Source of the DNA: Geosiphon pyriformis uo1
Lineage: Eukaryota > Fungi > Glomeromycota
DNA length: 64,000 nucleotides
Direction of reading: 5' to 3'
Assembly: GCA_016748015.1 (NCBI GenBank)
Contig: JAAOMT010000175.1
Span: forward strand, 470,212-534,211
Part shown: piece by piece, positions 2,918 through 39,489 of the stretch
How positions within the stretch are numbered: the first letter of the stretch is position 1
Layout: every line of letters begins with the position of its first letter
Notes under the pieces: model-generated
Database searches by the model: none
Seen by the model: the letters and a program-made list of their open reading frames with translations, nothing else
What the model was told of the DNA's origin: nothing
Program-made: the position numbers and the translations under genes

Positions 2918-5900
2918 GTGGCAGAATCAGAAAATATAGGAGCAAACCATTTAGGATTCACGAAATTTTTATTTCAATACTACTGTCAACACTTGAGATT
3001 GAACCACAATCAGATATTAGCAGAATTAGCCTTCAATTTTTACGTCAACAAAAAAATTGCCTATTTGTTAGGAACACTAGTAAACACTGAATCAGTGAAA
3101 GAAACTTTTTACCATGAATTAATCCAAAACACCAGCTTACCAACAAATTATAATTTTGCATTCATTATCATTGAGATTAATAAAGAAATTGAACATTACA
3201 CACAACAAAGATACCCAATTACTTATGCCAATAAAAACAAAAGAAAATTACAAACATCAGCAGTAACACCTTAACAGATCCAACCACCCACTTGGAAGAA
3301 ACACAGAATTGAATTACCAACAAATTCATCATATCACTATACACTTGGAAGCACCATCAACATCACAGCAACAGATGTGTCCACATCACATGTGACATCA
3401 ACCTTTGGACAATTTCCATTTTAGAGTAAACAAAGGAAAAAAGATCTTCTAGAACCATATGGTGCATATTTCGAAGGATTTAAGTCACAATCTTTAATGC
3501 TATCAGGACTTCAATCTCCACTACTGCAACCAGATTTTGGAACCACAAGTCCCTAGGAAGTAATGGATTCGAAAGAAGAACAAAAAAAAAAGGAAGAAGA
3601 ATCTGAAGATAAAGAATTTACATACCAGAACCCAATCCCAGAAAACCCGAACATTGAAATCCCGAATTTTCAGACTTAGCAAAATCCAAATTTGGAAAAT
3701 CCAGAAATTAAGACTTCAAATTTCCAAATACAGCACAATCAGAACAATCACAATCCCAACATTAATAATCAACAACACTTACCTCCAGTAATCGTGATTA
3801 ATCCAGCTCTACCAATTGATGAACAGCAACAGCAGCTACTTCAACCACCTCAACAACCACAGCAGCCACTTCAACAGCTGCAACAACAACTGCAATAACC
3901 AAATGTCAATCCAATGGCCTATGCTCTGATAGCAAAACTTAAGAAATTCACCAGTGAAAAAGACAATGCCCAAGTGTGGCTAAACAATATGAAGAAAGCC
4001 ATTGTAGCCAACAGCTGGAATGATGCCAGAGTCATGCAGGCCATTCCTTACTTTCTCCAAGATACTGCCAATTCATGGTATTAAAGCTTGACTAACAAAT
4101 CCCAAGATTTTGCTGTATTCAAGCTTGTATTCCTACAATACTTCAGCAACAATAATAGTATTATTTGGCTAGCAAACACTTTCACCACTATCAAACAAAG
4201 AAAAAATGAAGCAATCACTACTTATCTAAGATGCTTTTATAGGAATCTGCACCAAATTCAAGCAATCCAGGCTGACTATTTTACAGCACCCCAAATCCTA
4301 AACCAATTTATTAGAGACCTATGCAGTAGCATCCTCCAATGCATATGTCCAATGCATTCAGCAGACCTTCAAGCCACAGTTACCAATGCCTGAGATTTTG
4401 AAGCAGCTGAACTCAAAGCTAACCATGCCCAAACTGTTAATCTAGTGATGAATAGATTATCTGAATTGGATTCCAAATTGAAACAATTCAGTGATTCCAT
4501 CAATCAGAAATTAAAGGAATACTTAGTTGACAATCGCACAATTTATTAGCCACCCCAACGATACAATAATTTAGGAATCACAAATTGCCCACAAAATCAT
4601 TTGCATTCCTTATCATTATCCAATCAGCCATGGCAGTAAGAAACACATATCTGCTACTACTATGGTAAACAAGGACATTTGAGAATTAATTGTTGGTTAA
4701 GAATAGAAAACCAATGATTGGAAAATCAATATCAAAACCCCGATTGCAGATTTCCAACTCTGAATTATTAAGCAAGCTCAGCAACATATCAACTGACTTA
4801 CCTGCCAATGACGCAACTGCCAATATATCAACCACCCATATATCAACCTTCAGTTTATCAACCACAGCCACCAATAATATATCAACTGCCACAGCCACAA
4901 ATAATTTATCAGACACCCACAGCTCAAACACTGCCATCAAACCCAGCTCAAATAACATTAGAGAACTCTAAATCAAGAGTTACCCAAAACTGGAGATTGG
5001 CAATGGTTGTTCACCAACTGATTCCCAGTTCACCCAACCAGCTGTCCAGATCATGACAGTGAAGTTCAGGAACCGGGTATACTCAAAACCCAAGTTTCCA
5101 GAACTATTTAAGTCTTCTGGTTACCCCAGAAGGCACCTCACTCAACAACTGGGAACCCAAACAGAAGCAACCACTTACCAATATTCTGCCAGCTACTGTC
5201 ATGGAAGACGAGTCTCTAGTAGTTATATTTCTTTTTGAAATTAAGGAACTAACAGAAACTTCGTTGTTCAGTGGAGCCACACTCGAGGAAAAACCTATCA
5301 CAGCAATGTACATAGATGCCAAAATTAATGGTCAGTTCATTAAACTGATCCTAGATAGTGGATCAGCTGACAATATCATCACAAGACAGTTCATGGACCA
5401 ATTAGGTCGCCAAGTTAATTGAGCTGCCAGTACAAAGATAATTACCACTAATAGAGCCACTAAGACACCAATTGGTAAAATAGATGCCCTACCCATTGAA
5501 GTCAATGGCATCATTGTACTGATCAAGATATTAATTATAGAAGCCACTTAGTACTAAGCACTTGTTGGCAATGACTGGCTGTTCAAAACCCATGTGATAC
5601 TCGATTGGAACACCCAAGAGCTTCAGTTTAGTCAAAACGGTCAATACACATGTGTACCAGCCACATGTGGCCACTTCAAACCCATCACCATGCCATCAGC
5701 ACCATTCATCGAGTTTGAAGAAGAAAAAAAGAAACCTACTTGAGAAGCATACCAAGTCTTTTGGGCTGATGAAGACCACAATAAGTTGCTGTCAATACTC
5801 TTCTGGGATGACAACAACAAAGGAAAGCAGGAAAAAGAACTTACCTAGAATATCAACCAAGCCTGGGAAACTGATAACAACCAAGATAAATCAGCAAACT

Positions 5901-8900
5901 GGGAGTGGAAAAAAACAGACAAGGGAAAGGGAAAAAAGAAGAAAAAAGAAACCACTTTCACCAGCAGTACTTATAGTTCATATGCTTACACCTCATTACA
6001 ACCACCCAATTATCATCGACCAAAATTAGAATGTGTCAATTGTGGCAAGAAATTGTCATCAATAGGTGCTTGCTGTGGCAACAATGAAGAATATGCCATG
6101 GCCACAAAATTTTATTGCCATTCATGTGTCATAGAACACTTTGGATGACCGAAATGACAAGAAAAGTGGAATAATCAACCCTGTCTTACATGTGAAATTA
6201 TCTTACTGGACAAAAGAATGTGGAATAACATTCCTGGACATGGAGGAATATGTGACAAGACATACCAGTACACCATTTTGATAAACAACTGGATATGCAA
6301 GGGAACACCAATTGATGATGCATGGAAAAGAGCATTGTAACAATTAGAAGGATATTTCCATGATGAACATAAACTTTGGAGAATGACGTATGTGAAAACA
6401 GAAGGTGTGACAACTAGTGAACTACTGGAAATTAAAAACAACCCTCTATTTCTTCCTGAACCCAAATATGTCCAAACTTTTAACATCTTTGGCAACATTG
6501 AGAATGACCCAAAGGAATTCCACAAACATTATCAGTGATTAGCATCTACTAGAAAAGAGCAGAAACAACACTTGGAAAAACTAAACACCCAATTATGTGA
6601 CCACTGTTTGATCTCATATAACTTCCAATATTGTAATAAGTGTGACCTCATTTACAATCCACCACCATGCATGATCTACACAATCCCAAAAGAAGACAAA
6701 CCAATGAGCAACTGCACATCAGAATTGGAATCAGTTTTTAATTCCGATTCAAACTCTGACAATGATAATGATGAAAACACCAGTTTCAGTTTTGCTCAAT
6801 ATGGCAATAAAAGTCTCAACAATTCAGACTCTGATTCAAACCCAGAAATATACATTGCACTTCCTGATCTCTCTAAAAAACAGGAACTTAAATGGTACAG
6901 CAATAATACTGAAGGTATTATGTCTAAACATGTGCATAATACTGATACAGGGTTTGATCTGAGATATTCAGGGAAGGATGTCATCAAATTGGAACCAAAT
7001 TTGCACACATGTATTGATCTCAAAATAGCTCTGGAAATTCTGGCAACAATCATGATTCAATTAGCATCTAAGAGTAGTCTAGTAAAAAAAGGAATTAATA
7101 TCAGAGGAGGAATAATTGACACAGAGTATGTAGAAAATATCATTATTATGCTACAAAATGACTTGGAAAAGGCCTATACTATAGAGCCAAATGAAAAGAT
7201 AGCACAGGCAATATTCCTATCTCTGGTGAAAATAGCTTAGTTAGTTTCAATAGGAAATAGAGAAGAATTAGGGATTACTGCTAAAGAGATACAGGGATTT
7301 GAATCAACGGATAGAATAGATATACCAGTTAATATGGCAGAGAAAGAGATTATTGACAAAGAAGAAATTATCTCAACTCATTAATCAATCTCCATTCTAT
7401 CATATGACCAGTATATGTTAGCCATAAAAAGAAAAGTAAAGAATCAAGCTCAGTTGTTTAAAGCAGAAGCTGCCATGTGTGAATTAGGAAAGGTTGGGCT
7501 CACCAATCTCTACATATCAGCCAACAGTCCCAAAAACATCAAAATTTCTATCTATAATACAACTGGAAAGGTCATCAAAATACCAAAGGAAACTACCATT
7601 GGATATTTAACCACTCAAGTTGAGGATCAACCACCAAACCATGTTCCAGATTTTCCACAGCTTTGCAGATATGTGGACATTACATCCCAAACCATCTATA
7701 AACAAAGTAAATGTTATCTGCTCCAACCAGAACAATTGGAACAGATGAATATAGAGAATCTAAACCCATTTCAACAAATGCAACTAAAGATATTACTCAG
7801 CAATTTCAATGACATTTTTGCTAGTAAAAATGAATTTGGCTGCACCAACATCATTCAGCATCAGATTAAGACTGGAGATGCAATGCCAATCAAGCAAAAA
7901 ACATACAGAATACCACCAGCTAGCCATAAGATTATTTGTCAAAAAATTAACCATATGCTTAACAACGGGCTAATTCAGCCATCCATGAGTCCCAATGGTC
8001 ATTACCAGTAATATTAGTCTGGAAAAAAAATGGAAAAATCCGTTTTTGTGTAGACTACTGGAAACTGAATAAAGTAACAAAAGGTAATAGCTATCTAACT
8101 CCAAAGATCCAAGAACTATTTGATGCTTTTGGAAGAAATAAATGATTCTCAACACTAGATTTAGATAGTGGCTACTGACAAGTAGCCATGAACCCAGCCG
8201 ACAAAGAAAAAACAGCATTCACAACAAGAGAAGGAAATTTTGAATTTGAAGTCATGCCATTTGGTTTGATGAATGCTCCAGCAATATTCTAATGGCTTAT
8301 GAAAATTGTCTATACTAGATTACTATAAAAATCAGTAGTTGTATACTTAGATAACACAAATGTATTCTCCAAGACATTTGATAACCATCTATATCATTTC
8401 CAACAAGTATTTGAAAGACTCAGATGAGCAGAATTGAAACTAAATGCCAACAAATGCTTCTTTGGCAAAACTGAACTCAAGTTTTTAGGACATGTAGTAA
8501 GCAAAAATGATATTAAAACAGATCCAAATAAAATTGCCATAGTAAAAAACTTTCCAGTACCAAATAATCTTATGGAATTGAGAGCATTTTTGGGATTTGC
8601 TAAATACTATTGCTGCTTTATTAAGGACTTTTCCAAAATAGCTCAACCACTACACCAACTCCAAACAAAAAATGTGAAGTATGAATGAACAGAAACTCAA
8701 CAAGAAGCTTTTAATATATTAAGAAGAAAGTTTATCCAAGCTCCAGTATTAATGTATCCAGACCACAACAAACCATTCATAATCACCACCGATGCATCAG
8801 ACCAAGCATTAGGAGCAGTACTTTTACAGAAAAGATCTGATAGAAGAGAACATCCAGTAGCTTACACCAGTAGAAGTTTAAGTTCAGCTGAGAAGAACTA

Positions 8901-13965: not shown

Positions 13966-14679
13966 TAATATTGTTATGATTGAAATTTATGGTTTTTATT
14001 AATTATCACATGTATTAGCCATTAATATTATATAATTAGCCACCCTATTTTTAGATAGTAATTATTAATCTGATCAATGATCTGACTATTAACTTGATTA
14101 TTGACTACTTTTAATCACTATATAAGTGATAAATTTCTTAGCTGTAGAAAAGCATGTAAGAATCAAAAGAAAATAAAGAAATAAAATAACAATTTTATTT
14201 TAATCCTTCTCTTTTTGCTAATTTCTCTTTTTTTACTTTTAAGTATCTGAATATCTTAAAATAAAAGGTTACTTGTTGGCATTTATTTACTTTTTTTCTA
14301 ATTTGTGTAATTGTAGCATTTAAAGATTATTGAATAAAATATAACTAAAGAGCATATCTGATATCTGATATTGAATTTTAAGAGTATCAATATAAGATAT
14401 AGAATTATACTAGTGTATTATTATTTGTTAACAATATAGACTATCCTTCTACTTTTAAATTTTTCAGTTATTTTTTGAAAAGAATAGCAATTAAGATATT
14501 TTATGAAACTAATTTTATACATTGAATCCATATTTATTTAATTCACTCCTTAAAATTAAATCTCTTTAATTAATTTTATTATTATATAATTTTGTTTTTT
14601 CTTGTTATCTATTAGCTTATTACTTTAACTCATAATAATATTTTAAATAGACTTAATAGAATATATTTGTAATATTTGG

Positions 14680-17600
14680 TGTTTATAATTTGGTATTGGA
14701 AACAAATTAAGTTTAAATAAATTGGTTTTAGTAGTAAAATCAATTATCAGTTTTTGAAAATTTTTCTGTTTAAAGTTTTATCTGTTGAGTTTTTTATTAT
14801 AAAGCACAAAAATATTATTTTTTTCAATTGTGTTATTATGATTGTATTTTTTTTTGAGTTAATAAACACAATTATTAAAGTTTAATATTGTTTTTTTGTT
14901 TTTTTAATAAGTTAACAAAATAAAGTTAATATTCAAACCTAAAGAAAACTTTTTTTTTTACCAAACTATTATAAAATCTATTCTTAAATAGTCAATTTTT
15001 AATATTGCTACTTTACAAAAAAATAAAAAAATAAAAAAAAATTAGTATTTTATTAATTGTTATAATTAAAAATAATTGGTTCTAGTTATTAAAATTTTAA
15101 AAATTTTATGTTAATTTTATTTGGTCTAAAATAAAGATAAACAAAACAATTAATTAGATTTCAATACTTAAAGCATTTAAAATTTTAAACTTGTAGATTT
15201 AACAATAATATTTTATTTAGTAAATTTAAAATATAAAAGATAAAAAAGAAAAAAAAATTTTTAAGACTAAAAATAAGATAAAAATATAAATTAGATATTT
15301 GTATATTTTTTTTTTATTTGTAAAAATTACTCATTTTATATATTTTTTTTAGTTTTATAAAATTGTTTTTAATTGCTTATTATTATTAACTATTGTTTAT
15401 TATTTTAACTATTGTTTTATTTTTTTGTATTATAATTAATTATCTTATATTATTATTAATTTTTCTGTGCTATTTTGTATTATTATATATTATTATGTAT
15501 TATTATGTATTATTATGTATTATTTTGTAATATTTTATATTATTTTATGTTATCATATTTTTTTTATGTTATTATATAGTAATCATATTTTTTTTAATAG
15601 TTTTGGATTAGTTTTTTTATTTAGATAATATTATTTTTTTCTTTTAAAATTAAGCTTTTACAAAATTTTTCAAAGTTAATTTTTGAGTATAATATTCAAA
15701 TATTATATTAAATATTGTTTTTTGTAATTTTTTAATGTTGTTAACTGTAATTATTTTTATTATACTGTTTGATAGTAGTGCTGAATAGTATTTAAATGTT
15801 ATATACAGTTTGTAAATTGCTTTGTAATATAATATTAGATTGTTTTTTTTAATAAATTGTTTTATTTGTTTCAAAACTTTTTTATTAAATATTTAGTTAT
15901 TATTATTAACATATAATATTTATAAATCCAGTTTTTTACTAATTTTAAAGAAATAATATGTTGATAAAAAATCTTTTTTCTATATTTTAAAGATCTTAAG
16001 TATCTATTTTCTTGTGTTTAGTTTTATTATTAAGTTGTTCAAAGCTTTTTTTACTTCTTTTATTATTTGTATATTAAGATTTTTTTTGTTTATTATTAAG
16101 TAAAATTGAAATATTTAATTTTAATTAAATTTTTGTTCTTTTTATTTTTGTTTACTGTTTTGTATTGTAATTCTATTTTGTCAATAATAATTTTTAATAA
16201 TGTTATTGACTATTAAATGGCTTTAAACAATTGTTATAAAAGCTTTAAAATAGTGTTTAAAATAGTGTTTAAAATATTTATAGTAAAAAAGTTTTGGGGT
16301 TTTTTTGGTTATTGGGATAGTGTTTATAACTTAAAATTTTCTATATCTTAACTTATAATTAATAAGCTATATTTAATAATAATAATTAATTTTAGATTTT
16401 ATGAAATATTTTCAGATATGACCAATAAAATTTGTGTTTTTAGTTGTAATATAATTGATAATAATTTTTGTATTGTATAATAAAGTTTTAAATTATTTTT
16501 ATGTGTGACTTTTTTAAAATTTTGTTTTTTAATTATAGTTTATAAGTTCTATTGTTAAGAATTTTGTATATATAAAATAGTTTATCTTATTTTAAGTTAA
16601 ATTTTTTATTTTATTGTTTTTTAGCTTAAATATGATATAATAATACTTTATTTTTAATCTTGAATTTAACTAGTTGATTTAATAAGTAATTATCATATCT
16701 TTTTTTTTGTTATTTTTAAAAATTATTAATATTGTTAATTGTTGTTTTATAATTATTTTTTAGTGTTTTTATAAGTTAATATGTTTTTTAATATAAGTTA
16801 ATTTTAATATTTTTTTGGTAATTGTTTTTATTAAGAAAAAAAATATTTCTAATTCAATAAACAATATAATTTTTTTTTATAAACTAGTTTAAAGAATGTA
16901 AATTAAATAGTATTTTGCTTTAATATTCAAAAAATTTAATTAATAAATTAACATGAAATTACTTTTATAATTTTTATTATTAATTAGCCTATAAATATTA
17001 TTTTAATTATTATTATTATTTAATTATATTATTAAATATTACTATCTAATTAATAATTTAATTTGTATAATACACAAATAAAATAATCAAATTATGCAAT
17101 ATTTTAAACTCCATAACAGTTAAAAATTTACTGAAATTTATAAAATTTTATAAAATAATTTAATAGTTTACTAAAATAATTTATAATTTGTAAAAATAAC
17201 TTGTAATTTACTAAAATATATTTTTAGTTTGTTAAAAAAAAATACAAATTTAAAAAATAGTATTATAATAGGTTGTATAAAAAAAGAGCTTTTTTTTTGG
17301 AAAAAAATGTATTTTAGCAGAAAATAATAATCTTATCTTCTATAGAATAAATTTCTTAGTACAAATTAATAAAATATTAAATATTTAAAAACATAATTTA
17401 ATTTAATTAGGTATAAATTAAAATCTAGAAAATTTTAATTAACATTTTGAAATTGATTAGCTACCAATTTCAATAATCTATTAGTAATTTTAAACTTAAA
17501 CAAAAAACAATTTTCTTAATAAAATTTTTTTTTTTACATTTTTTTTATATTTTTTATATTTTTTATTATAAATTATTAAAGTAATTTACAATCAAGATTT

Positions 17601-18231
17601 TTATATAAAAGTTTATTTTTATAGCAAAGTAACTACATATTTTTAATAAGCTTTTAGATAAACATTTTTTGAAAAAAGTTGATTTTTACTATAAAGTAAC
17701 TATATAAGTAACTAGTATAAAATTGGCTATTTTACTTTTAAGCTTAGCAATTTAAATTATAAAAAATAATTTAAAAATAAATTCAGTTATTTAAGATTCA
17801 ACTGCTTTTAGTAATTAAAATTAATAGCAAAACAATATTAACAACATTTAAAAAAAGAAACCAAAAACCTCTAATAATATCAATATATAAATAGTACTAA
17901 AAATATAAATAAGTCTTATTTTTGTGTATTTTTATAATTTATTTTTGTTAATATTTCACATAATATTTAGTTAAATTATTCTACCAATTTATTTGTCTAA
18001 AAATAATATAAGAATAATAAGAATTATTTTATTTTAAATTATTAACTTAGTTTTATAAAAATATTGTTAACAAAATAAATTCTTTAATTAAACAATAATT
18101 TTTTCAGATATTTATGTTAACAGATTAGATCTTGATATACAAACTTAGCTATTGTTTTAATATCTGCAATTTGAATAGTTTAGGCTTTTGGCTATTTGGT
18201 AAAATAGTTTATAACTATAACAAAATATTAA
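14680..18231 (-). mobile_element. Decayed Gypsy 3' remnant (integrase core and C-terminus, ORF3, PPT, 3' LTR ~14680-15630), interrupted by a solo LTR
   Basis: 17880-18230 and 16550-16920 align by eye to the integrase at 42760-43470 (NYFTK*PKA..AKFVYQDLIC). ORF 15650-15874 is homologous to ORF3. PPT-like 15631-15646. Left boundary approximate. Confidence 0.7.
16924..17879 (+). repeat. Solo LTR of the second Gypsy family
   Basis: Reverse-complement homologue of LTR 56647-57541 (e.g. ttttgaaattgatta.ctac.aatttca.taat). No adjacent PBS or PPT. Boundaries approximate. Confidence 0.7.
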
Positions 18232-21200
18232 TTTTTTTTTTTTTTATACATTTATTGAGTAAAGTCCAAACACAACCTAAAACCATACATCAAATAATTG
18301 ATCTAAATTAAGCATGAATCATGTACTTTCTACACGTGACTAGCCACTCAGGCCAATTAAAACAACACTATGCACCTATATAAACAGAAACTGCATCTAA
18401 AGTGCCTGAAACGAACAAACTAAATTTGCACAAACCAAACTTAATGTCCAATGCTTTATCAATACCCAACAATCTGACAACCCCAGCTGAATACAGGGAA
18501 GACAGACCAGAAATAGAAATCAGCACAAAACCGTCTCGAGGAATTAACTCATGCTTTTCCATAAAGGCACAATGTTTGACATAGACCAACCAAACTTCAT
18601 CTCTAAAAGCTAGGCAAAAATCATAGACAAAGTCCACAATTTTCACACCAGCAAGTTTTAGGTCACCAAAAACAGAAACCGTCTCAAAAAACCAATCATT
18701 AAAAACAAAGCCTTTGCATAGAGCAACACAGACCAAGGTATCAAAAATACATGAAGAAAGAGTTCGCAGCACATGAAAAGAAGGGCCATGAAGGCCAAAA
18801 ATGCCTTCCCATTTAACCACATAATCACCAAACAGCCAATCACGATTAGCAAAGTCAGAATCACAAGAAAAAACATGGTCCAAGACCTCCACACTTCCAC
18901 AAAACAAGCAAATCACACTAGGGTAACTCCTATCATAAAGGCATTTGCGAACGGCCACAAGCAGTCTATGATGTAAAGCTTTCATAAAATATGTGCTCAA
19001 GCCAATGGTCCAAATACTGGTAAAGCCAATAGCCATGTGTGAATCGGAATGCCAAACAGAAGAGGATCTGTGCCAATCGATATCTGTGAGCAATTCGCCA
19101 ATGACAACCCTATTATCCGAACTGAAACCCCAATGCGAACGGATAAATGTCACGCACAAAATGCCTAGAATTATCTGAAACCGGACTACTACCAGCCAGG
19201 ATAAACTGCTTGTCCAGCCGGGAGGGAAGAACAAAATCAGAAAGAGCTGCACGGCCAGCCAGATTATCAGCCCGGTCATTACCTACAACACCAGAATGTT
19301 CTTTAACTTTATACCAGCTAACATCCAACCTTTTAGCACAAACAAGACCAGCAATATGATGGTGCTCCACCCAACAACTATTTCAAAAATCCGGATGTGC
19401 AAAACCCAATTCCGACCTGCAAGCGTTCAATGCGGCCTGACTATCTGAAAATAAGCTAACTTTGCTAACTGCAGGAACACACTCAAGAGCAAGTGCAATA
19501 GCTTGCAATTCCACCAAAATAGATGACAACAAACCCGAAACCTTAACACCTAAACTCATATTAATATCATCAAAGAAAACCGCCACATCTGATTTAACAC
19601 TGAAAGTACCCAAACCAGCCAAGGATCCATCAGTATAGACCGAAAGGCTATCAGCACCCAATTCCAATAAATGATTACAAACCAAATCAAAATCAGTGGA
19701 TTCCAAGACACTAGGAGCAGAAGAAATACCCACCGAACAGTTATGAACAGAAGAAGATGACTCTGTACCACCAAGATAACCAACAGAGACACCAAACCAA
19801 TTAGGAATGGGACCATGTGGATCCAGCCTTTTCCAACACTTGAAAGTCTTCCAATTAAAAACACCACTATTGTGTTGATGCAGTTGTTCCACAAAGGCAA
19901 TTTTATACCACCAAAGTGAGGAGAAACACCTAAAGAATTTCACCTTCCCAAAAACCAAAGACATGAGAGTTCTACAGGAGAATCAGAATGCACTGGGGCC
20001 AGGACTACTAAAGAATAAGCTGCAGTCAGCAAAAATACAAACCACACCCGCCAGAAAATTGTTTGAGGGATTTAATTTTAAACAAACCAGGAAGACCAAA
20101 GGGTGCACAGAACGCCAGCTCAAAGTCTATAAGTCATGAGACCTATGGAAAAACAACTGACCCAGGATTTCAACAGCATTGGCAAAATACACTATGAATG
20201 CCGAATTACTTTCAGCCTGAATCTGCTCAAAAGTCTTTAAGCTGTAAAGGGATAGATGATGAAGAGCATCATTGGGAAAGTCCAAAGAAAGACCCGCCTT
20301 GGATTTGAAGCCTTTATGAATCAGAGCGTCCCATTTACAGCAAACACTAAGTGGAACAAAACTAAACTGCATTCTATAATTGACAATAAATTGCAGAACT
20401 ACTGAAACCAAATACAAAAACTGCTTATCAGAGATGGCCTTTTTCAGGACGAGATTGGTGAAAAACTGAATATCTGAATGCACCTTGGCCAAATTGGGCT
20501 TTGACAAACCATCCGTACACAGAAAGATGCCCAAATACTGGTAAGGTTCCTCTTTCTTGGCAATAGAAATTGGTGAACCACTGATTGTCAGAAAGGGGCT
20601 CACAACCCTACAGTTAATGGGAATTGTCACTGTTTTGTTATTGTTAATTGAAATATCATTAATTCTAAAAAATTCACTAGCAACATTAAGAATGTGTTGT
20701 GTTGCAGCCTGACTGCTACCGACCCAAATTGTATTGTCCACAAAAGCACCAGCTGCAAAGAAAGAAGAAAAACCAGCTTGAGGTTCAACACGGCCAGTCT
20801 TAGCAATGAAATGAGAATTCAACCTATATCCACAAAATTCTTCTTGCCTCTTAACTTCACACAAAAGAGAATCATAAAATATACGCCAAAGAAGAGGTGA
20901 GAACACTTTTTCTTGATCGAGATCATCATGGACTTGATAACCATCAGTTAAGTCAAAGTCAGTCATTATTTGGTTGACTCGGTTATTGTGAATGCCACCA
21001 AAAAATTGAATGAATCTGTCACACATCTTAATCCTAATTAGACTCTTTTTCAAATGCTCCTAGCCAACAGAATCATAGGCCTTCTTCATGTCCTGCAATA
21101 CCAGCCAAAGTTCATGGTTCTTTTCTAGAGCATCCTCAACCACAGAGCCAATAGCAAAGATAGGAGACTGTGTCATTGTGCCCTTCAAAACAGAAAAATT

Positions 21201-22652
21201 GTCACTGCGGAGAACATTGTGAGTACTGCATGCCAAAGAAATTCTGTCTGAGAGAATCTTTGAAAGAATCTTACAAGTGGTTTCAATCAAAGCAATGGGT
21301 CGGGTGTTCGTAAGAACTCCTTCCCACTCATAAGGTTTGGGGATCATAGACACCCAAGCTTCCCTCCAAGGACTAGGAACTAACTCACAGAGCAAACAAG
21401 AGTTCAAGAGCACCAACAACATATCCAGAACCGATTTGTCACAATGCTTCCAAAGCTCATTCGAAATACCAGACAAACCAGCAGCTTTATCATTAGGCAA
21501 GTCTGACACAACACTAAGCAACTCAACAGAACTAATAGAGTCCATTATTTTCAAAAATGCCTCATCAAATACATACTCCAAGGGTTGGTACTGGCGACAC
21601 CAATCAGCAGAGACATTAGCAACCAACTTGCGTTTTCTGGTCCAGCTTTCCATGATAACATCCACCTTAAATTTAACCAAACTAGGATCCAAAACCAGTT
21701 CATCATTGACAACCAAATAATCCAATACCACCTTGTGAAAGGAGTGCTTTAGCACACTCTTAATTGTATGACCCTTATCCACTTCAAAACTTTCCATCCT
21801 TCTACTAACTGCTGATCTGATACGAGATTCTTTAACACGCTTTGACTCGGACAATTTAGAGGAATGATACAACTTCCTGACTCTGAACAAGACAGATCTT
21901 ATGACCTCAAAATACGACCCCAAAAGAAAAAGAGACTCCACCACAAAAACATTTGTAGCGTCCAATGAATTCCACATACTTAGTAGTGCAACAAATTCCT
22001 TAAAAGAAACCAAATGTGATGCTTTAACTAGTTTAGACACCAAAAGTTCTAGCTTGTGAAACTTATAAGATTCCTTAGTAAACACATTATCATAACTTTT
22101 GAACCATTTTTTTTTGAAAATATCACTCGCTGATAAGCACACAATTTTGTGGACAACGTCCTACATAGCATTCAGATCCAGAAACAATAGAGCAGCATCA
22201 AACTTGCCCTTAAACATCACTGTGGTGGCAGTAGAAAATTCTTTGAATGCAGTCTATTTGGCAGTCATAGCATCTTTAAAATTGAACTTCCACCAATCCT
22301 TATTCGCCTGCTTATAAAAGGACATCAAATTAACATCCAAGAGACCACCCAGGCCCACGGAAACAGCAACAGCCCTATAATCAATATCAAAATATTCATT
22401 AACCCTGGCTACACTTCAATCTAAGATTGCGTTGACCAAGTTCAATAACACAAACACATAATCAATAACCTTAGCCAACCCTTAAGAATTGGTCCAAGTT
22501 GCATTCCTCCCAAACGAACTCCCTCCCAAGGCATTGACCAAACCCAAATCAAAACATTTCCTGAAACTAGCACACCTGTGAGAGCCATCTTCATTGAAAT
22601 TGCCGCCCAATATCACGAAAGATGACTCATTAACAGCTTTAGCAATCAAAGA
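18232..22652 (-). mobile_element. LINE 3' piece (APE C-terminus, RT, RNase H, CCHC, 3'UTR, poly-A); best preserved ORF2
   Basis: ORFs 21060-22142, 20127-21053, 19383-19964 and 18368-19279 carry RPIALIE, QDMKKAYDSV, GAFVDN, VYTDGS, LFSDSQ, CLFC..H..C. Poly-T at 18232-18245. Confidence 0.93.
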
Positions 22653-25600
22653 TACTTAATATCCATTAGTCAACCCAAAATCTATCATAACCCTGTTGAC
22701 CCAACTATTATGAATGCCACCAAAAAACCAGATAAACTTGTCACATATCTTTATTCTGACTAAACTCTCCCCAGCCAACAGAATCATAAGCTTTTTGCAT
22801 ATTCTACAATACCAGCCACAGTTTACGGTTCTTTTCCAAAACATCTTCAATAACTGACCCAATAGTAAAAATAGGAGATTGTGTGGTCATACCTTTTAGA
22901 ACAGAAAAATTATCCCTTCTAAAAACATTAAACTTACTGAACACAAAAAAAATTCTGTTCGAAAGAATTTTAGAAAGAATTTTGCAAGCTGTCTCAATCA
23001 AAGCAATAAGACAGGTGTTCATGAAAACACCTTTTCACTCATACAGTTTGGGGATCATTGACACCCAAGTCTCCTTCCAAGGCCCAGGAACAGATTCACA
23101 ATCCAAGCAAGAGTTCAAAAGCACCAAAAACATATCCAAAACTGACCTGTTACAATGTTTTCATAACTTATTTGAAATACCAAAAAGACCAGCCACTTTC
23201 CCATTAGGCAGATTTGAAATAACACTAGACATTTTATCAAAATTGATTGGGCACATCACATCAGAAAAAGTGTCATCAAAAACGTACTCCAAAGGCTGGT
23301 ATTGGCAATGCCATACACTAGGAACAATAGAAACCACATTGTGCTTCCTAATCTACTCTTCTATGACCATATCTACCTTGGTTTTAATCAGATTAGGTTC
23401 CAAAACCAATTCATTATCCATGACCAGATGATCCAAAGTCACTTTGCAAAAGGAATGTTCCAGCACATTTCTAATAGTATGACTTTTGTTCAATTCAAAA
23501 CTTTCCATCTTCTTATCTATTACTGACCTAATTCTAAATTCCTTAACACATTCCACTTCTGATATTTTGGAGGAGTGATATAACTTCCTAACTTTGGACA
23601 AAACTGATTATATGGCATCAAAAGAGGAATCTGACAAAAAAAAAGACTTCACCATAGAAGCATTAACTAAATCCAAACTCTTCTACTTGCCAAGCAAGGA
23701 CGTAAATTTCCCAAAAAAATCCAAATAAAACGTTTTAACTAACTTTAACACTAAAAGCTCCAGCTTGTGAAATTTGGATGACTTCTTAACAAAAACATGA
23801 TCATAGTTCTTGAACCATTTCTTTTTAAAAACTGCTTCAACAGACAGACATAACACTTTACAGAAAGCAACCCATATTGCATCCAAGTTTGAGTGCATTC
23901 TAGCTGCAAAAAAGTTGTCATGTAGCATAGCAGCATTTGCCACCATATCATCCTTAAATTTGGCCCATCTAATACCATTTGCACCTTTGCAATTGTACTT
24001 ACAACAATCCTTATTTGCCTGTTTGCAAACAGAATTCAAGTGAACATTAAGCAAACCACCCAAACCTACTAACACTAAGACAGCCTGATAATCAGTATCA
24101 AAGTATTCCTTAATACCAAACACGCCATGACCCACTATCACATTGACCAAGTTCGAAGAAATGAGCATATAATCTATTGTCTTAACAACACTTTGAAAAT
24201 TGGACCAAGTTGGTGATTTCTCACAAGAGCTTCCACTCAAGACATTAACCAAACCAAAATCCAGGTATTTCTTTAAACTAGTATACTTACAAGAACTGTC
24301 TTCATTAAAATCATCTCTGAAAATAATAAAAGAAGATTCATTAACAGCTTTTGCTATAAGAGAATTGATATTGCTAGTCTGAGAAAACCAGGCCACCAAA
24401 GAGATGTCAGCGTAAAGCCCCAAAATTGACACAGAAAGATTATTTTTGAAAAGCAACTTGATAGACAGGAGCTGACTAGGCATTTCTGAAATTTTGCATA
24501 CATGTTTTGCCAAAGAAGAGTTCATGACAACCACAACACCAGCACTCAGATAACCAGATTCTAAACCAGAGATAAACACCTGCATACCATCAAATTTATT
24601 GACAATCCAGGGGTAAACTTTCTCTTTCAATTTTGACTCTGTAAAAATAGAAACTAGATTGTTCTTTTCCTTATGCCAATGAATAATATTATCCTGTTTC
24701 GCAGGATTGTTTATTCCTCTAATATTACAAGTCACAACTTTCCATATCATATCACTTATTGAGAAAAAAGAGGAGAAACCGAACTAACATTGTCTATTTT
24801 AGCTAAAAAACTCATAACTGTGATCAAAAAATTGTTCAATGTTTTTTCCAATCTCAAGATAACTGTAGGATTGAAAACCACCACTCCTGCAACAGTCTTA
24901 CCACCAGTGGCCACACCCAAACTCTTACTTATCACTATATCTGCCTCTTGATTTTGTGATGAAGAGGTCACCAATAGCTGACATTCAGGACTAAGCTGGG
25001 AAACCATTGGCTCAGATGTGCTCAATCTCATAGTCAACATGTCAACATGCTCTGTAAAGTTGGCAATACTGCACTCAAGAGTGACAAACCTATTATTCAA
25101 TTCCAAAGATACCAATGGGGTAGGCTTCATCTTTGAAGAGAAGCCAGCTCTTAACAAAACATTCTGAACAGGAAGAGGAAGAAAAAAAAACCCATCAGCA
25201 ATTTGCACCTATAAGACACCATCAAAAGAAACAGGACGAGCAACCAGAGCTGAATGTTTGGCATAAATGGCAGCCAGTCTGCTTTTATCCGAGTTCAAGA
25301 AAGTTTTTCGCAATGAAGCACCAGAAGGAACACTCTTTTTTTCACCAACAGGGCAAGCCAATGATGTATGACCCAATTTTCCACACCCAGCACACTTGGC
25401 CGAAACAAGACAAGACCAGTGCAGATTGGCCCCTCTCAGTACTGGCATGGTTTCTATGACAGCATTTAATGACTCAACAGAATCAAAACAAACAGTAGCA
25501 CACCTGGCCCAGACATAAGAAACTGGATGATGGTCAATTACACAAGTTTTCTCATCCACTGAAGTGACATAATTCCAAATATCATGTACATTGGTTCCCA

Positions 25601-26686
25601 TTGGCAAAGTGTACAAAAGAGCTTTATAAACATTACATGCATCCCATAATTCTTTGTTCATATTAGATCTAGCAACATGCACAGCATCCTTCCCAATTAG
25701 AATAGATCAGCATACTGTGACCAAATCAGCATGCTTAACCTGTTCAAATTTAATCACAGTTTTCTGCCACAGCCCCACCAATTGCATCTTGATTGACTTA
25801 ATAATACCAAACTTAGATAGCACAGCATGCACAGCCTTAGTTGAAGTACCAATTGGAATCTTCATCAACACCACAGCCCGATCTGAACACCCAAATGATT
25901 TCTTAAGATCAGAATTTACCATAATTTTTGCTTTTTCAGCCTTTTTAGAAGCCTGCACCCAACTTAATTTGGAAGTGAACGTCACTCTGATAATTCCAAC
26001 AAATTTTGAAGGGGTAGAGACCCTCCCAAAACCATTAATTTTTGAAAACAACTTTCTGACTATCTGAAGCTTTTCTTGAGAAAATTTTCCAACCACTTTG
26101 TCCAAACCAATATCCAAAATGAAGGATTTACAAACAGAAATGTTGACCAGATTTTTTAAAGGTAGGGAAAATTCCAATGGAGCATTTAAGAAGACATTAT
26201 CTTCATTGTTGCTTAAAGAGAAATCAATTTTTCCCAAAGACTTGCCCAATGCCTTCTTGGTTTTAACTTTTAAACCAGTAGGTGTTTGATTAGAATCACC
26301 AGCAATAGCACCACCTTCACCATAATCAAAACTGGTCTTTTCTACCAAACACTTCTTTTTTATATCAATGCTATCAGACTTAGTAGTGTTACCAGTCTCT
26401 GAACCTCATGAGTGACTAGTTTAGATCTTAGAACCAACAATATTACCACTAAAACCATTCTCTAAAATACTACCTCTTTTTTTTTCTTAGAAGAACAGGC
26501 CTAAAGTCATTATTAGAACCAGAAATCTTAGCAGTTTTTTTCATGACAGCAATACTACAGCCAACAGTGGCCTCATAGTCAAGAATAAAGGGTTTAGATT
26601 TATCATACTGAATTGTAAAAAAAACTTCTTTCAAAAAAAACTTTGACTTTTTTTTGGGAATTTGGATGAAAAAGAGAAAGAAGTTT
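22653..26686 (-). mobile_element. LINE copy C, 5' piece: 5'UTR, ORF1, APE, linker and RT N-terminal half
   Basis: ORF1 ~26544-24756 with knuckle CAGCGKLGHTSLAC. ORF2 APE 23683-24750 (TCNIRG, TESK, DFN, IDY, DTDY). RT runs to ..DFGLTNGY*V at 22653. Confidence 0.92.
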
Positions 26687-29949: not shown

Positions 29950-31733
29950 AAAACAAGTTAAAAAACAAATTTAATATATTTACAATTATTAAATTATATT
30001 ATTTAATAAAATAATAAAAATAATAAAAATAAAATATGTATATTAAATTAAAATTAATATATAGTCAAATCTAAGATAATTTATATTCTTAATAAATACA
30101 AATTACTATAAATTATTACAAATTATGAGTTTTTTTTAGATTTAAGTATATATAGTATACATATAATAAAAATAGATATAATATTATTAAAAATTAAATT
30201 TATTTGCATATTTTTATAAAAATCTTTAAATAGTTTATATAATATTAAAGAAACTTATAAGAATTATTTGTTTTTGTTTATTTTGTATTCTTTTATAAAA
30301 TATATATTTAGCATAAACAAGTTTACTAATTATATTATAAATTTTTTTGTTATTTTTAAGCTCCATAAACTATTTAAGATTTGTAATAACAGTTAGTATA
30401 TCTTTATTACTTATTATTTTTTGTATCTTTTATTTTTTATTAGAGTTATTATACTTTGTTTTACAATTTGTTATAATATAATTTGCAATCTTATTATTAT
30501 CTAGATATTCCAAAATAATTGTATTGTTTTTTTCAGATAGATTTATCAACTTTTTAATTAATAAGTATATATATAATTAAACTCTTTATAACAATTTTTA
30601 ATCTTTTTTAATACTATTTTTTGATTATAAATAGCTATTATTTTCAAGTTTGTAGTTTTATTCTGAAAGTTTTTATTTGTATTGATTAAAAGAATATTAA
30701 CTTTGTATTAACAATGAACAATTATTTTAATTAAAACATTTTTTTATGTTTTATAAATTAGACACATTGCTTAAAGTTAGTTAATTGCATAAATATTATT
30801 AATACCATCATCAAAAAAATCCAATGCATAAAAAAAAAAATAGTAACAATAATATGTTTTAAAACAATAAATAATTCTAATATTTATAGATTAAATATGT
30901 GCTATTAAGTTAAATATAAACTGTTTTATATAAATATTTATAATAAAGCTTGTATTATAGTTGTAATTAGCAAAATTGTTTACTAATAACAATATGTTTT
31001 GGTTTTTTTTTATGTAGCTGATAGTCTTAATTAATAAGTTACTATTAAAAAATATTATTAGTTATCTAAGTGTAAATGTTTAAATAATATTAGAAACTAA
31101 ATTTTTTTCCTGTTTCTTTTAAAAACAGCATAAATGTTTAGTATAATTAATAATAAGTGGTAATATAATATAAAATAGTGCAATTTCATTCATGTTAAAA
31201 ATATTACATAACTTCTAATCAGCAAAAAGTGTTATTATATTTACTTATTTATCTTTAATATATTTAATATTGATTGATAATATATTATTATAAAAGTGAA
31301 GTAAATACAATTCAACACAGTCTTTAAAGCTTTTAAGCCAGTTATTAATTAGTTTTTGGTGCTTATTTTCTGAAATATCTAATTAATTATAGAATTTTAT
31401 GTTAGTAGCTTAAATTATATTTTCAGTAAGTATTATTTTACACAATTCTGTTTTTTGAACAAAAATTTGGTTTATTTTTAATCCAAACTGAAATTAGAGA
31501 CTATTTTATGTATAAAAAACTGTTTTTCTTAAAGTGCTTTGCAGTTTTTGATTGGTTTTTATTATTTGTATAATATTAATCAAGCACTATAAGCTTATTA
31601 TAAAATATAACATTCTTACAACTTTACAGAATATAAACTAAAAAGATAGCATGCTTTTTACTATTAGACATAATAGAATTAAAAGGCAAAGAAAAAGTAT
31701 AATTAAGACTTTGATTAGATAAAACTGATCTAA

Positions 31734-32390
31734 AAATCCGACTTGATTATTTACACAATTGATAATAATTTAAAACTTGAAACAATTTAAAACTCTGATT
31801 TGATTACTTACATAATTGATAATAATTTAGAACTTGGAACAATTTGAAATTCTGATTTGATTATTTATACAATTGATAATAATTTAAAACTTAAGACAAT
31901 TTGAATTCCAATTTAATTACATATACAATCAATAATAATTTAGAACTTAAGACTATTCAAAATTTTAACTTGATTATTTATACAATCAATGATAATTTAA
32001 AACTTGGAACAATTTGAAACTCTGACTTGATTACTTATACAATTGATAATAATTTAAAACTTGAGACAATTTAAAACTCTAACTTAATTATTCACAAGAT
32101 TAATAATAATTTAAAACTTGGAACAATTTAAAACTCTGACTTGATTACTCATACAATTGATGATAATTTAGAACTTGAAACAATTTAAAACTCTGACTTG
32201 ATTATTTACAAGATTAATAATAATTTAAAACTTGGGATAATTTGAAATTATGACTTAATTATTTACAAAATTAATAATAATTTAAAACTTGAAACAATTT
32301 AAAACTTCAACTTGATTACTTATACAATTGATAATAATTTAAAACTTGAGACAATTCGAAATTCTGACTTGATTACTTACATGATTAATA
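31734..32390. repeat. Minisatellite, 57-bp unit, ~11.5 copies
   Basis: Unit ~AACTCTGACTTGATTACTTACACAATTGATAATAATTTAGAACTTGGAACAATTTGA repeated head-to-tail without spacers. Confidence 0.95.
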
Positions 32391-35630: not shown

Positions 35631-36031
35631 AAAAATATACTTAGAATGTTCAGCGGTCTGTGAGGATGTTCTTGTTTAAAGCAAAGTTTTAATTTTTCAT
35701 AATCACGATATCTGGCCATAATGGTTAGAACAATTACAATTAAATCATTGACACAATGAATGCGTAATATTGAATTTATATGCAACTCAGAGATCATGGA
35801 GAAAGAGGGTGAGTAAGATAAAAAAGGGTATGATATGGAAGAATCATTTGAAAAAAAAAACTTTAAAAATCTCAATTGATTGCTTTTTTTTTCTCTCAAA
35901 CTTCTTCCACTTTCACAACACAACACAACACAACCTAATCCAATCCTATCATTCTGTTTCAAAAATTTATCTTTCAAAAAACAACCTAATCAAATATTAT
36001 TTCTCCATCTTAATTATTGTTCTTCTTAAAA

Positions 36032-37509
36032 ATGGCTCCAGCAACAAGTAAACCATTACTAGATATTCAATTAAAACAAGTAAACCAAGTTGTAGAAGTA
36101 ATCAAACAACTCCCCAGTGACCCCTCTCACCTTCTCACCGGCAAACCTGAAGAAACGCTTACACTCTCGGTAACACTCGCCCCAAAAAGTCGTCTAGAAA
36201 TCGCAGCAATCTCAAGCATAATTCAATACTCATGTGATTTGGTGCTCACTAAACTCGTACATGACGTTCGACTCGACTTCTCACAAGTTAAACTCCCGTT
36301 CACCTTCCCATCACAAAAATCAATTCGTGATATTCTTTTCGCAAAAGGTGAAAATTCAATTGTGTTGGAACTTGTGAGTAAAGATTGTCGATTGACCGTT
36401 TTTCGACGAAATGATCATGCACATCGTGATGAGTGGTATGAGACGGTAAAGAATTGGAGACATGATCTGCCATCAAGGTTTCATTTGATGTTGAATGAAT
36501 TGGTTGAGAATATTTCCGCCCATGCTCAACTTCCCGAAGAACGGTTTTGTTTCACCGTCGGCTTATTGTTCTCCCAAAAAAAGGTAGATAAATGTTGATA
36601 ATGCTGACATAATTACAGCAAATTTGTCAATGATATTCATTGCATAAATTGATTGATTTATTGATGTTGTTTGTTTGGGATCTTTAGTTGTATTATTGTG
36701 TCGCCGATAGTGGAGTCGGCCTAAAAGGTTCCCTCAATGAAGCAATTGTTTCTGAGGCAAAAGATGTTGCATCACGAGCTTGTGCTTTACACTTGACACG
36801 GGCTCATTTCACATCAAAAGGTTTAGAGCGTGGTCATCAAGGTGTCGGATTGTTTATCACCAGTGAACTGTCTACTATGAACAAAGCCTATTTGGAAATT
36901 TTATCCGGCGTACAAGAATATGAGCAACGAGGTAAATTATTTTTCTAATTAAAAAAATTATTTTTAATTAATGAGATAAATATTTGCTCACTAAATAACC
37001 ATCTTTTTTATCCCCCTTCAAAAATTAAACCAGACACAACGGTAACAAGTGTCCGAGCAATGGCCAAATGGAAAGGAACAATGGTTCACGGTGCTATTAA
37101 TCTTGATCAAGAATTTAACTATCGCCACGCAATGAAACTATTCGCCGAACCATCCGCAATTAGTAAAGATCGCTTCCTCGTATGTCAAATAAGTCTCAAT
37201 GTGTACGGTCAACGAACTCTTCGTACACGAGAACTTTGCGAAGAAATTATTCAGGATTTAGAAATCGCTGCCGAACGATCATCCAAAATTATTCTAGATT
37301 TTAAAAATATCGATGAAATCAGTCAAGCGTTCCACGGGTTCTTACGAAGATTTGTTGCTAATCATAAAAAAATACGAATTATGATCATGGTTCCACCCGA
37401 GGCCGACGCTGATTTGAAAGAAGATTTGGAAGATTTGAATCGATTGGCGAATGAGAATTGGATTGAAGAAGGGTCGGATGAGTCGCTATCTGATCCTGAG
37501 AGTGTTTAA
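36032..37509 (+). CDS. Intact 3-exon gene, join(36032..36583,36688..36931,37034..37509), 423 aa: GHKL/HATPase_c anti-sigma-factor-type kinase domain + C-terminal STAS-like (DUF4325-like) domain
   Basis: GT-AG introns 36584-36687 and 36932-37033 join three ORFs in frame (1272 nt). N-box NELVENISAH, G1 VADSGVG, G2 HQGVGL, WKGT. C-terminal LRTRE..IILDFKNIDEISQAF. CpG retained; no internal stops. Confidence 0.9.
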
Positions 37510-39489
37510 AGGAATGAATAAATAAATGATGTTCCTTAATTGACCAAAAACATTCTGTAAAGATAAAACGATTAAAATTAGGGCTTAGATTCTTATTCAT
37601 TTCAATGCTTTTTTTTCTCTTGTATATTTTCTGCAATACCAATTCATTACATATCATATTTTCATTTCTCATACAAAAATACATACATGTTATTCATAGT
37701 GTTATATAATCTACATAGATAATTAATAAACATACGCCATTAACAAAGGAATTCAAAGTTTTTTTCTCCCAAAAATGGATTAATCGATTAACTCTTGATT
37801 ATAGAGTATTTTATGGTACACACTTATAAACAAAAACCAGACAAATGAAAGGTCATTTCTTCTTTGGTGAATTGTCACGTTTTCCATGGCTGGCCGGCGC
37901 CTTCCGCACGATTGTTATAGGCTATTCTTTTACGCGATTTGGAGACACCCACACGAACAAACTGGTTGATGGTAACCCGCCTTCATCATTGACTTTTCCA
38001 TCTCCTATTAAAAGACGTTAGTTTTTATTCCGATAGGCACACTGTTTAGACGTGTGATGTTCCAACTGCCTTAGTTATGAATTATTTTATTCAATAAGCA
38101 TTAAATATATTAGAGGTTGAGTTTTTATTTAATATAATCATCTAGAATACTTTAAAAAAGAAATTTACTCATAATTCAATTGTAAAATCATTTAATTAAA
38201 ATAAAATATTTGACCCTAATAATGAATTAAGCCAACAGCAACCATAATATATTTGCATATGAAATAAAAAATCTTTGGATATACTAATGTCTAATATAAA
38301 AAACAGACAAGCTTATTAAGTGGCACAAATTAAAAATGATTTTATCAAAAAAAAATTGATAAGATACTCGTCAATAGTAGTATTCAACAATTTACTAGTT
38401 CATGAACTTTACTAATTGTGCTAATTAAAAAAAAAGGAAAAATAAGGTTTTGTATAAATTATTAAAAGTTAAATGCAATAACCAAAAAAAACAATTATTT
38501 ATTAATAAATTAATATGTTAAATGTTTTTTAATATTAGATTTAACAAGTGATTATTAAAAAAAATAAATGATATTAGAAACAAAAAAAGTAGCATTTATT
38601 ATCAAACATAATATTTATAAGTTTAATATTATGTTATTTAAATTAACTAATATATTAACTATTTTTTAATGACTAATGTACATTATTTTTCGAAATAATT
38701 TATAAAAACACATTATTGTTTACTTTAATAATTTTAAAATTTACTTAACCAGTCTTAATAAATATTTGAAATAAAAAATATATTATATTTAAAACTTGGT
38801 ATTATTTTAATACAAAATAATAATAGTATTTAAAAAAAAATATATATATTATATAAGCTGTTAACTTAACAAGCCAAAAAACAAATATGTTGTTATTAAA
38901 TTAAAATAATTAAAAAGTTTTATTATTATATTTATAATACTAAATTTAATTTAATTATTAATTGTAAAACTGTTTATAAAATGCTTAATAATAATAATTT
39001 AAATATAAAATTTGGTGAATAAATTATAATTATGCAATTATATATTTATAATTATATTTATTAATTAAATAAAAAGCATTTAAATATTGATTTATTATTT
39101 AAAATTTCAATTAATAAACTAATTTAAATATATAATTAATATTATTAATTAAATAATTATTAAATTTTTTATTAAAAAAATAAAAATAATTTAAAATTAC
39201 CAAAATAAAGTTCAAAAAAAAGTAACCAGGAATAAAAGTATTTATATAAATAAATGAAATCAAAATTAATATATTTATATAAATTAAATTTTTTTTTGCT
39301 TGAATAAGTATTATTATTAAAATTATTAAAATAAAAACAATTTAATTTTAATTATATAAATTTATTTAATAAAAACAATATATAATAAATTATATAATAT
39401 ATATTAATAAAAAACCAATATTAATTAAATTATTATTATTTAAAAAAATCATATTAATCTATTTAAACTATTATTAAAACAAAATAAAA

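Follow-up and report, generated by a model that had tools for sequence, protein, structure and literature searches.

SpoIIAB-SpoIIAA and RsbW-RsbV are partner-switching pairs in which two small separate proteins control a sigma factor, and Rv1364c of Mycobacterium tuberculosis carries an RsbU-like phosphatase, an RsbW-like kinase and an RsbV-like STAS domain in one polypeptide. In the CapK-CapS pair, CapK has the domain order helix-turn-helix (HTH)-STAS-GHKL and CapS is a STAS-winged HTH (wHTH) protein, and a VapK-VapS-VapC system has been described in the same work (Chambers et al., EMBO J 2026, PMC13373217). Single-stranded DNA (ssDNA) activates CapK and VapK, leading to phosphorylation of a conserved STAS serine, CapS S54 or VapS S48, upon which the STAS protein lets go of DNA or of the VapC toxin; the aromatic residue that stacks on DNA is W68 in CapK and F54 in VapK (PMC13373217). 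PIN genes of the VapC group had earlier been noted as coupled to DUF4325 genes (PMC5499597). Here we describe a gene of the fungus Geosiphon pyriformis, located at 36032-37509 on the + strand of a 64,000-nucleotide stretch (the window), whose product joins a GHKL domain to a DUF4325/STAS-like domain. We consider it probable that this gene is the single-copy Glomeromycotina orthologue of a bacterial family whose fused GHKL-DUF4325 members are solitary, acquired in one ancient transfer, and that its product would act as an ATP-driven, self-contained kinase-STAS switch.

The locus is a real, spliced and expressed protein-coding gene with three exons and two introns, whose ATG lies at 36032 and whose product has 423 residues. 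Its parts, all on the + strand, are the following.

35898..37602, + strand: transcribed span, covered by a 1510-nt contig of a public run
35898-36031, + strand: 5' untranslated region (UTR), from the transcript contig
36032..36583, + strand: exon 1 coding sequence, residues 1-184, with the N-terminal alpha/beta domain (~1-140) and the start of the GHKL domain including the N-box
36584..36687, + strand: intron 1, GT..AG, 104 nt, phase 0, after codon 184, skipped in the transcript
36688..36931, + strand: exon 2 coding sequence, residues 185-265 and the first base of codon 266, with the G1 box, the ATP lid and the G2 box
36932..37033, + strand: intron 2, GT..AG, 102 nt, phase 1, skipped in the transcript
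37034..37509, + strand: exon 3 coding sequence, residues 266-423 and stop, with the end of the GHKL domain (G3 box), the linker, the DUF4325/STAS-like domain and an acidic tail
37507-37509, + strand: stop codon, the end of exon 3
37510-37602, + strand: 3' UTR, from the transcript contig

The 1510-nt contig is 100% identical to 35898-37602, with 0 mismatches, and lacks exactly the two introns. It aligns as 35898-36581, 36686-36929 and 37032-37602, and a 2-nt shift of the joints gives GT..AG at both introns. The run is labelled 'RNA? (probably DNA)', and the transcript reading rests on these clean GT..AG joints. Additionally, exon 1 matches one place only in the 128-Mb Geosiphon genome, which makes the gene single copy, and the intron-less contig is therefore a transcript and not a retrocopy. 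Eleven extra letters that precede 35898 at the 5' end of the contig have no genome match and may be the remnant of a cDNA adapter marking the 5' end. This gene model can already be found in GenBank as KAG9302948.1 (P0016; 423 aa), deposited on a 639-kb contig as 'hypothetical protein G9A89_022365 [Geosiphon pyriformis]'. Its residues 1-184, 185-265 and 267-423 equal the translations of the three exons, save that the first TTG of exon 2 was rendered as Met by the translation program. An earlier note, made by a model from the letters of the window, had proposed a spliced gene with two GT-AG introns and a 423-residue splice product, and the exon model and the transcript contig bear this out.

The product consists of an N-terminal alpha/beta domain (~1-140), a Bergerat-fold ATP-binding domain (~145-292) and a DUF4325 STAS-like domain (~310-407). 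An AlphaFold2 model built on a 144-sequence alignment reached a predicted local distance difference test (pLDDT) score of 85.1 and a predicted template modelling score (pTM) of 0.85; a single-sequence model of the orthologue P0001 was unusable (pLDDT 36.6). In this model the GHKL domain has the Bergerat alpha/beta sandwich and the C-terminal domain has the STAS alpha/beta fold. Foldseek matched the model to GHKL proteins, with SpoIIAB as the best by target (probability 1.0, template modelling score (TM) 0.61-0.66). Furthermore, the top four rows of the VIA-align comparison were the kinases SpoIIAB, RsbW and UsfX, with SiaB at rank 6. The best PDB sequence match was Escherichia VapS (9z7o_A), which two profile searches aligned to the C-terminal domain with E values of 3.8e-4 and 4.2e-4. 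The CapK/CapS-type pairs named in the earlier note are indeed described, in the same paper as this VapS (PMC13373217). Pfam found no DHp/HisKA or receiver domain in the fungal protein, in agreement with what had been read from the sequence. In addition, ESM Atlas models of bacterial 'ATP-binding proteins' of ~300 aa matched residues 2-305 (TM by target 0.65-0.71), and therefore the N-terminal domain and the kinase form a unit in bacteria too; ESM Atlas clusters of fused DUF4325-HATPase proteins matched residues 6-412. Together, these comparisons support a protein devoid of histidine-kinase parts, in which a GHKL domain like that of the anti-sigma-factor serine kinases is joined to a DUF4325/STAS-like domain.

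Motif positions were checked by codon counting along the gene, and conservation was read from a merged alignment of 144 fungal and bacterial sequences (the fungal profile having 22 sequences). The features concerned are listed below.

36494..36523, + strand: N-box, N155-E-L-V-E-N160-I-S-A-H164, with E156, N160 and H164 invariant in the 144 sequences
36706..36720, + strand: G1 box, D191-S-G-V-G195, with D191, G193 and G195 invariant in the 144 sequences
36832..36849, + strand: G2 box, G233-H-Q-G-V-G238, with G236 and G238 invariant in the 144 sequences and G233 invariant in fungi
37072..37080, + strand: G3 box, K279-G-T281, with G280 and T281 invariant in fungi and T281 at least 90% conserved overall
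36266-36289, + strand: N-terminal segment VRLDFSQV
37228..37230, + strand: Arg331, where the first STAS helix begins; apart from residues of the GHKL boxes, it alone is invariant in 144/144
37288-37332, + strand: C-terminal signature IILDFKNIDEISQAF
37321..37323, + strand: Ser362, unchanged in all fungal sequences, bordering the predicted helix 363-375 on its N-terminal side
37165..37458, + strand: DUF4325/STAS-like domain, residues ~310-407

The motif order of the GHKL superfamily, that is N-box, G1 (DxGxG), G2 (GxxGxG) and G3 (GT), is present in full. The GHKL boxes, the C-terminal signature and the VRLDFSQV segment that had been pointed out from the letters, including the Q235-G-V-G-L run that starts at 36838 within the G2 region, all lie where they had been placed. 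Ser362, Phe365 and the L-D-F strand are conserved at 90% or more in the 144-sequence alignment. The N-box follows the pattern E-x-x-x-N-x-x-x-H, the form seen in SpoIIAB/RsbW-type kinases.

The same architecture is found in a large bacterial family. The 22-sequence fungal profile reached the bacterial proteins P0029, P0030 and P0031, and a search with P0029 retrieved at least 484 bacterial proteins of ~410-430 aa with PF14213 together with PF02518 or PF13581. In hhalign, the fungal and bacterial profiles aligned at 98% (E 2.4e-13) over 217 collinear columns from the N-box to STAS helix 2, and among the best 40 rows bacterial members scored 37-48 bits against the fungal profile, each as a single uninterrupted domain. 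These relatives also pass the Pfam cut-offs, with 32.5 and 29.3 bits for PF13581 in P0030 and P0031 and 41-52 bits for PF14213 in P0029 to P0031. The C-terminus, which had been suspected of being DUF4325/STAS-like, is thus placed by its profile alignment to the fused family, by its fold and by VapS as best PDB match. In contrast, the idea that the fusion was a fungal invention has to be given up, since the bacterial family already has the same collinear order.

On the fungal side, the gene was found in Glomeromycotina only. A phmmer search of 1.84 billion cluster representatives with exon 3 returned a single protein, P0001 (406 aa, 70% identical), and a search with P0001 gave 25 proteins; all hits with E <0.01 were Glomeromycotina and came from every order, bar one row labelled Anthurium. 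Orthologues were found in the following groups.

Glomerales: Rhizophagus, Glomus and Funneliformis
Entrophospora: orthologue present
Diversisporales: Acaulospora, Diversispora, Gigaspora, Cetraspora, Dentiscutata and Racocetra
Paraglomus: orthologue present
Archaeosporales: Ambispora and Geosiphon

They are 65-88% identical across orders, with a mean column identity of 75%. The Anthurium row is P0008 in UniRef, labelled 'Dedicator of cytokinesis protein 7' of Anthurium amnicola; it shares 84% identity with the orthologue P0001 and is, judging by this identity, most probably a mislabelled mycorrhizal-fungus transcript contaminating a plant transcriptome. Searches of 5.8 billion and 1.84 billion proteins turned up no homologue in other eukaryotes, and the relatives detected outside Glomeromycotina are bacterial only, so that the broad eukaryotic distribution that would have spoken against the first interpretation is not seen. 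When proteins were matched to genomic loci, Geosiphon, Rhizophagus, Paraglomus and Gigaspora, which represent four orders, all had both introns at the identical codon and in the identical phase. In a tree with HTH-type proteins as outgroup, the fungal sequences formed one clade with 100% support, and Geosiphon grouped with Ambispora (99%), as expected for vertical descent.

In regard to the phospho-site, VapS has 116 aa and its PDB chain 134 aa, so that Ser66 of the chain is native S48. In both profile alignments S48 pairs with the middle position of a Ser-Ser-Ser triplet that is invariant in the bacterial fused proteins. Ser362, invariant in the 22 fungal sequences, aligns with the first serine of this triplet and directly precedes the helix 363-375 predicted by AlphaFold2; the phospho-acceptor Ser or Thr of SpoIIAA, CapS and VapS starts helix 2. 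Ser362 may thus be the phospho-acceptor, a one-residue shift in this loop being within alignment error. The serine that the earlier note saw near the canonical phosphosite is therefore there and adjoins it, but the site itself is occupied by Gln363.

Several results weigh against the reading that we propose. All three relevant Pfam matches of the full-length protein fall at the right place but below threshold: HATPase_c (PF02518) at residues 147-270 with 18.5 bits against a gathering score of 26.4 (20.7 for P0001), HATPase_c_2 (PF13581) at residues 145-246 with 14.2 bits against 27.4, and DUF4325 (PF14213) at residues 336-365 with 18.8 bits against 23. HATPase_c and DUF4325, which the earlier note had expected from profile searches, thus appear at the right place and in profile-profile comparison, but under the Pfam gathering scores; exon-wise Pfam, NCBIfam and PADLOC scans gave a sub-threshold DUF4325 and noise only (YbaJ, TomB, MkoA). 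The N-terminal domains of the fungal and bacterial proteins align at a non-significant 7% in hhalign, neither resembles STAS in sequence (~1-2%), and PDB sequence searches with the N-domain profiles gave no match; VRLDFSQV exists as a segment, but its reading as a second, degenerate STAS domain finds no sequence similarity to lean on. Gln363 is the fungal residue aligned with VapS S48, with Ser362 one residue upstream, and in P0030 and P0031, the fused relatives of HTH type, the 362/363 positions are Gly-Gln, devoid of serine, so that DUF4325-type STAS domains may not always be phosphorylated. In the tree, the bacterial P0029 family is monophyletic (95%) and does not include the fungal clade, whose stem measures 2.8 substitutions/site. 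No donor can be named, and the direction of transfer is argued from distribution and not from nesting. Finally, no fungal output partner is evident, the neighbouring DNA being retroelement debris, and the kinase role of the whole fused family is a prediction. A complex prediction of the kinase part with ATP against the STAS part scored 0.01, with no controls, and is evidence neither for nor against an interaction.

With respect to origin, horizontal transfer is supported because the superfamily is otherwise bacterial and absent from other eukaryotes, and an ancient transfer followed by vertical descent fits this distribution and the common introns. The ancient acquisition proposed in the earlier note accordingly keeps its bacterial-only relatives but not the nesting of the fungal clade within the sampled bacteria. 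That position outside the sampled family, the very long branch and the age of the introns would also suit an ancient eukaryotic or fungal gene inherited vertically and lost everywhere except in Glomeromycotina. We regard this as improbable, since the whole superfamily, fused and split, is otherwise bacterial, the billions of proteins searched yielded no homologue from other eukaryotes, and many independent losses would be needed, the same argument as made in PMC5982333. Even less can be said for a dead pseudogene, or for DNA of an endosymbiont (Nostoc or some other endobacterium) that contaminates the assembly, a reading whose probability is negligible and which is refuted by the spliced transcript and the introns common to other orders. 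Geosiphon does harbour bacteria, and a Nostoc plasmid carries a fused homologue; however, the transcript lacks the two spliceosomal introns of the gene, which are common to three other orders, the gene lies on a 639-kb fungal contig amid AT-rich retroelement DNA, its frame is intact and its protein is 65-88% identical across orders. The Nostoc protein, in addition, is a weak match. It has 414 aa, is encoded on the conjugative plasmid pANSO36B of Nostoc cf. commune SO-36 (L048, 1914-3158) and aligns to the fungal profile at 62% in hhalign (E 7.5e-5), weaker than the Clostridia proteins. The symbiont of Geosiphon is a Nostoc, and a Nostoc origin was rejected on two grounds: the plasmid homologue is weaker than the Clostridia proteins, and the gene predates Geosiphon.

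Regarding function, the mechanism is predicted by homology, and this applies to the kinase activity, to the residue phosphorylated, to the activating signal and to any output partner. The most serious alternative is that the GHKL domain is an ATP-binding or ATP-hydrolysing clamp or sensor and not a kinase, with the STAS domain serving as a pseudo-substrate or as an ATP-gated ligand or partner module without phosphotransfer. We consider this possible but unlikely. The glutamine in the canonical acceptor column and the Gly-Gln of the HTH-type relatives would suit it, and many GHKL proteins are ATPases, GyrB, Hsp90 and MutL being among the fold matches. However, the top structural matches are serine-kinase anti-sigma factors and not ATPases, the N-box has the SpoIIAB/RsbW form, and Ser362 is invariant in fungi and aligned with a bacterial serine. 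The same structural ranking bears on the suggestion that a fungal hybrid histidine kinase degenerated into this protein through loss of its DHp and receiver domains, which is very improbable. The HATPase_c matches, weak as they are, and the presence of histidine-kinase CA domains in the fold search point that way, whereas anti-sigma serine kinases match best, HisKA, DHp and receiver domains are absent from the Pfam results, bacterial GHKL-DUF4325 proteins align collinearly with the protein and no fungal histidine kinase appears among its sequence relatives. It was rejected for its missing DHp and receiver and for the anti-sigma kinases as best matches. A further proposal, that all arbuscular mycorrhizal fungi have kept, throughout their history, a bacterial anti-phage-type, ssDNA-activated damage sensor made of kinase and STAS that now serves as a stress or innate-immunity switch, is speculative and in our view rather doubtful. 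If it were true, such a switch could act, for example, against mycoviruses, transposon bursts or endobacteria in multinucleate hyphae, and would represent a eukaryotic reuse of CapK/VapK signalling logic.

According to the kinase-STAS switch reading, which we favour, a bacterium would have passed the gene once to the stem lineage of Glomeromycotina, the fusion having arisen before its transfer into fungi. The two introns would have been gained before the orders diverged, and strict vertical descent under strong purifying selection would have followed. In the cell, a signal, perhaps ssDNA as for CapK and VapK, could trigger the kinase domain, which would phosphorylate the STAS domain tethered to it, or the one on another copy of the protein, at or beside Ser362. 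This phosphorylation could change which fungal partner the STAS surface binds.

The observation made in the earlier note is thus confirmed and its first interpretation partly supported. A Rhizophagus irregularis protein annotated as 'ATPase, DUF4325' (ESA12330.1) was listed as a bacterial acquisition, and among the most highly expressed acquired genes, by Li et al. (Front Plant Sci 2018, PMC5982333). It is probably the Rhizophagus orthologue of the Geosiphon gene, as the R. irregularis entries named 'DUF4325 domain-containing protein' among those retrieved all belong to this family, and the transfer idea is probably not wholly new for that reason. The gene would represent a candidate for a bacterial signalling module that has persisted in a eukaryote, after its entry, over hundreds of millions of years. 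To our knowledge, genes that are specific to Glomeromycotina, conserved throughout the group and recognisable in their biochemistry are very few. Furthermore, the fungal protein could help to explain the role of the uncharacterised bacterial fused family; DNA-damage sensing was demonstrated in 2026 for the split relatives VapK-VapS and CapK-CapS (PMC13373217). This significance is tempered by the existing annotation of the gene, by the probable Rhizophagus orthologue already listed as a transfer and by an activity that is predicted only.

The earlier note had called this gene the only intact one in 64 kb. Among the ten longest other open reading frames (ORFs) of the window, 4/10 match retroelement-type domains (RVT_1, below the Pfam cut-off, dUTPase and A9-like protease) and 6/10 match nothing. 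Two runs of broken ORFs look like decayed retrotransposons flanking the gene, and long stretches of the window are very AT-rich.

5652-8011, + strand: broken ORFs, with a dUTPase at 6572-7240 and a spumavirus-A9-like aspartic protease at 7415-8011
18368-26348, - strand: broken ORFs, with two RVT_1 fragments at 20127-22142, both under the Pfam cut-off
14001-18000, 30001-32000 and 38001-62000: 13-22% G+C, against 36.5% over the gene, which forms an island in AT-rich DNA

The bacterial fused genes have other neighbours. A scan of one genome per species gave 31 loci, most of them in gut or rumen Clostridia, with single loci in Paenibacillaceae, Anaerolineae and one deltaproteobacterium. Eight independent genomic contexts were read, and the fused genes lay mostly in defence islands or mobile elements, as follows.

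A serine-recombinase island that also encodes a SIR2 protein and a zeta toxin
A fused gene adjoining a ThsA-Macro gene
L011/L012, 7001-8281: inside a type I restriction-modification (R-M) operon, the start overlapping the end of hsdS and hsdR following after 14 bp
Between SLFN-type helicase and SNF2/DUF1156 genes
A conjugative element
Beside ToxN and a SLFN-AlbA protein
A second recombinase island
One uninformative context

No recurrent partner gene was found across the eight contexts. Downstream of the fused gene embedded in the R-M operon lie YgjP-like and DarT-DarG genes, a setting that recalls the frequent placement of capK-capS beside R-M genes. A split form also exists: plasmid pAACI02 of Alicyclobacillus acidocaldarius (L049, 540-1748) carries a gene for a 298-aa 'hypothetical protein', the putative kinase, which aligns to the fungal profile at 95%, followed after 7 bp by a 103-aa 'STAS-like domain-containing protein' gene, an arrangement similar to VapK-VapS and CapK-CapS. 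This pair adjoins a sigma-factor-like HTH gene and insertion sequence elements.

Among the described systems, SpoIIAB and RsbW are separate small proteins, whereas the Geosiphon product is fused and its HATPase_c_2 score is under the Pfam cut-off; furthermore, we know of no sigma factor in any fungus. Rv1364c shares the single polypeptide, but it also has PAS and PP2C phosphatase domains, while the fungal protein has no phosphatase and a different N-terminal domain. VapK-VapS and CapK-CapS are like the fungal protein in combining a GHKL kinase of the anti-sigma type, with an extra N-terminal domain, and a STAS substrate, and they are tied to R-M and defence loci, as the bacterial fused relatives are. 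However, in these pairs kinase and STAS are separate proteins, and in Geosiphon they are fused. CapK and VapK carry a STAS domain before the GHKL domain, and at the corresponding place the fungal protein has an alpha/beta domain of ~140 aa, which may have a STAS fold but shows no sequence similarity to STAS. The Geosiphon gene has no VapC/PIN toxin, wHTH output domain or downstream immune operon; a separate STAS gene next to the kinase, together with an immune operon or VapC, is likewise missing, its neighbours being retroelement debris. The bacterial fused proteins, for example those of Pseudoflavonifractor capillosus, Anaerovibrio lipolyticus and Oscillospiraceae, are annotated merely as 'DUF4325 / STAS-like domain-containing protein'. 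They differ from the fungal protein in sequence (identity ~17-21%), in having Ser-Ser-Ser where fungi have Ser-Gln-Ala, and in their defence-island or mobile-element setting, the fungal gene having introns and no such neighbours. Nevertheless, they have the same length of ~420 aa and the same order of N-domain, GHKL, linker and DUF4325, and both share Arg331, the L-D-F strand and the three boxes N, G1 and G2.

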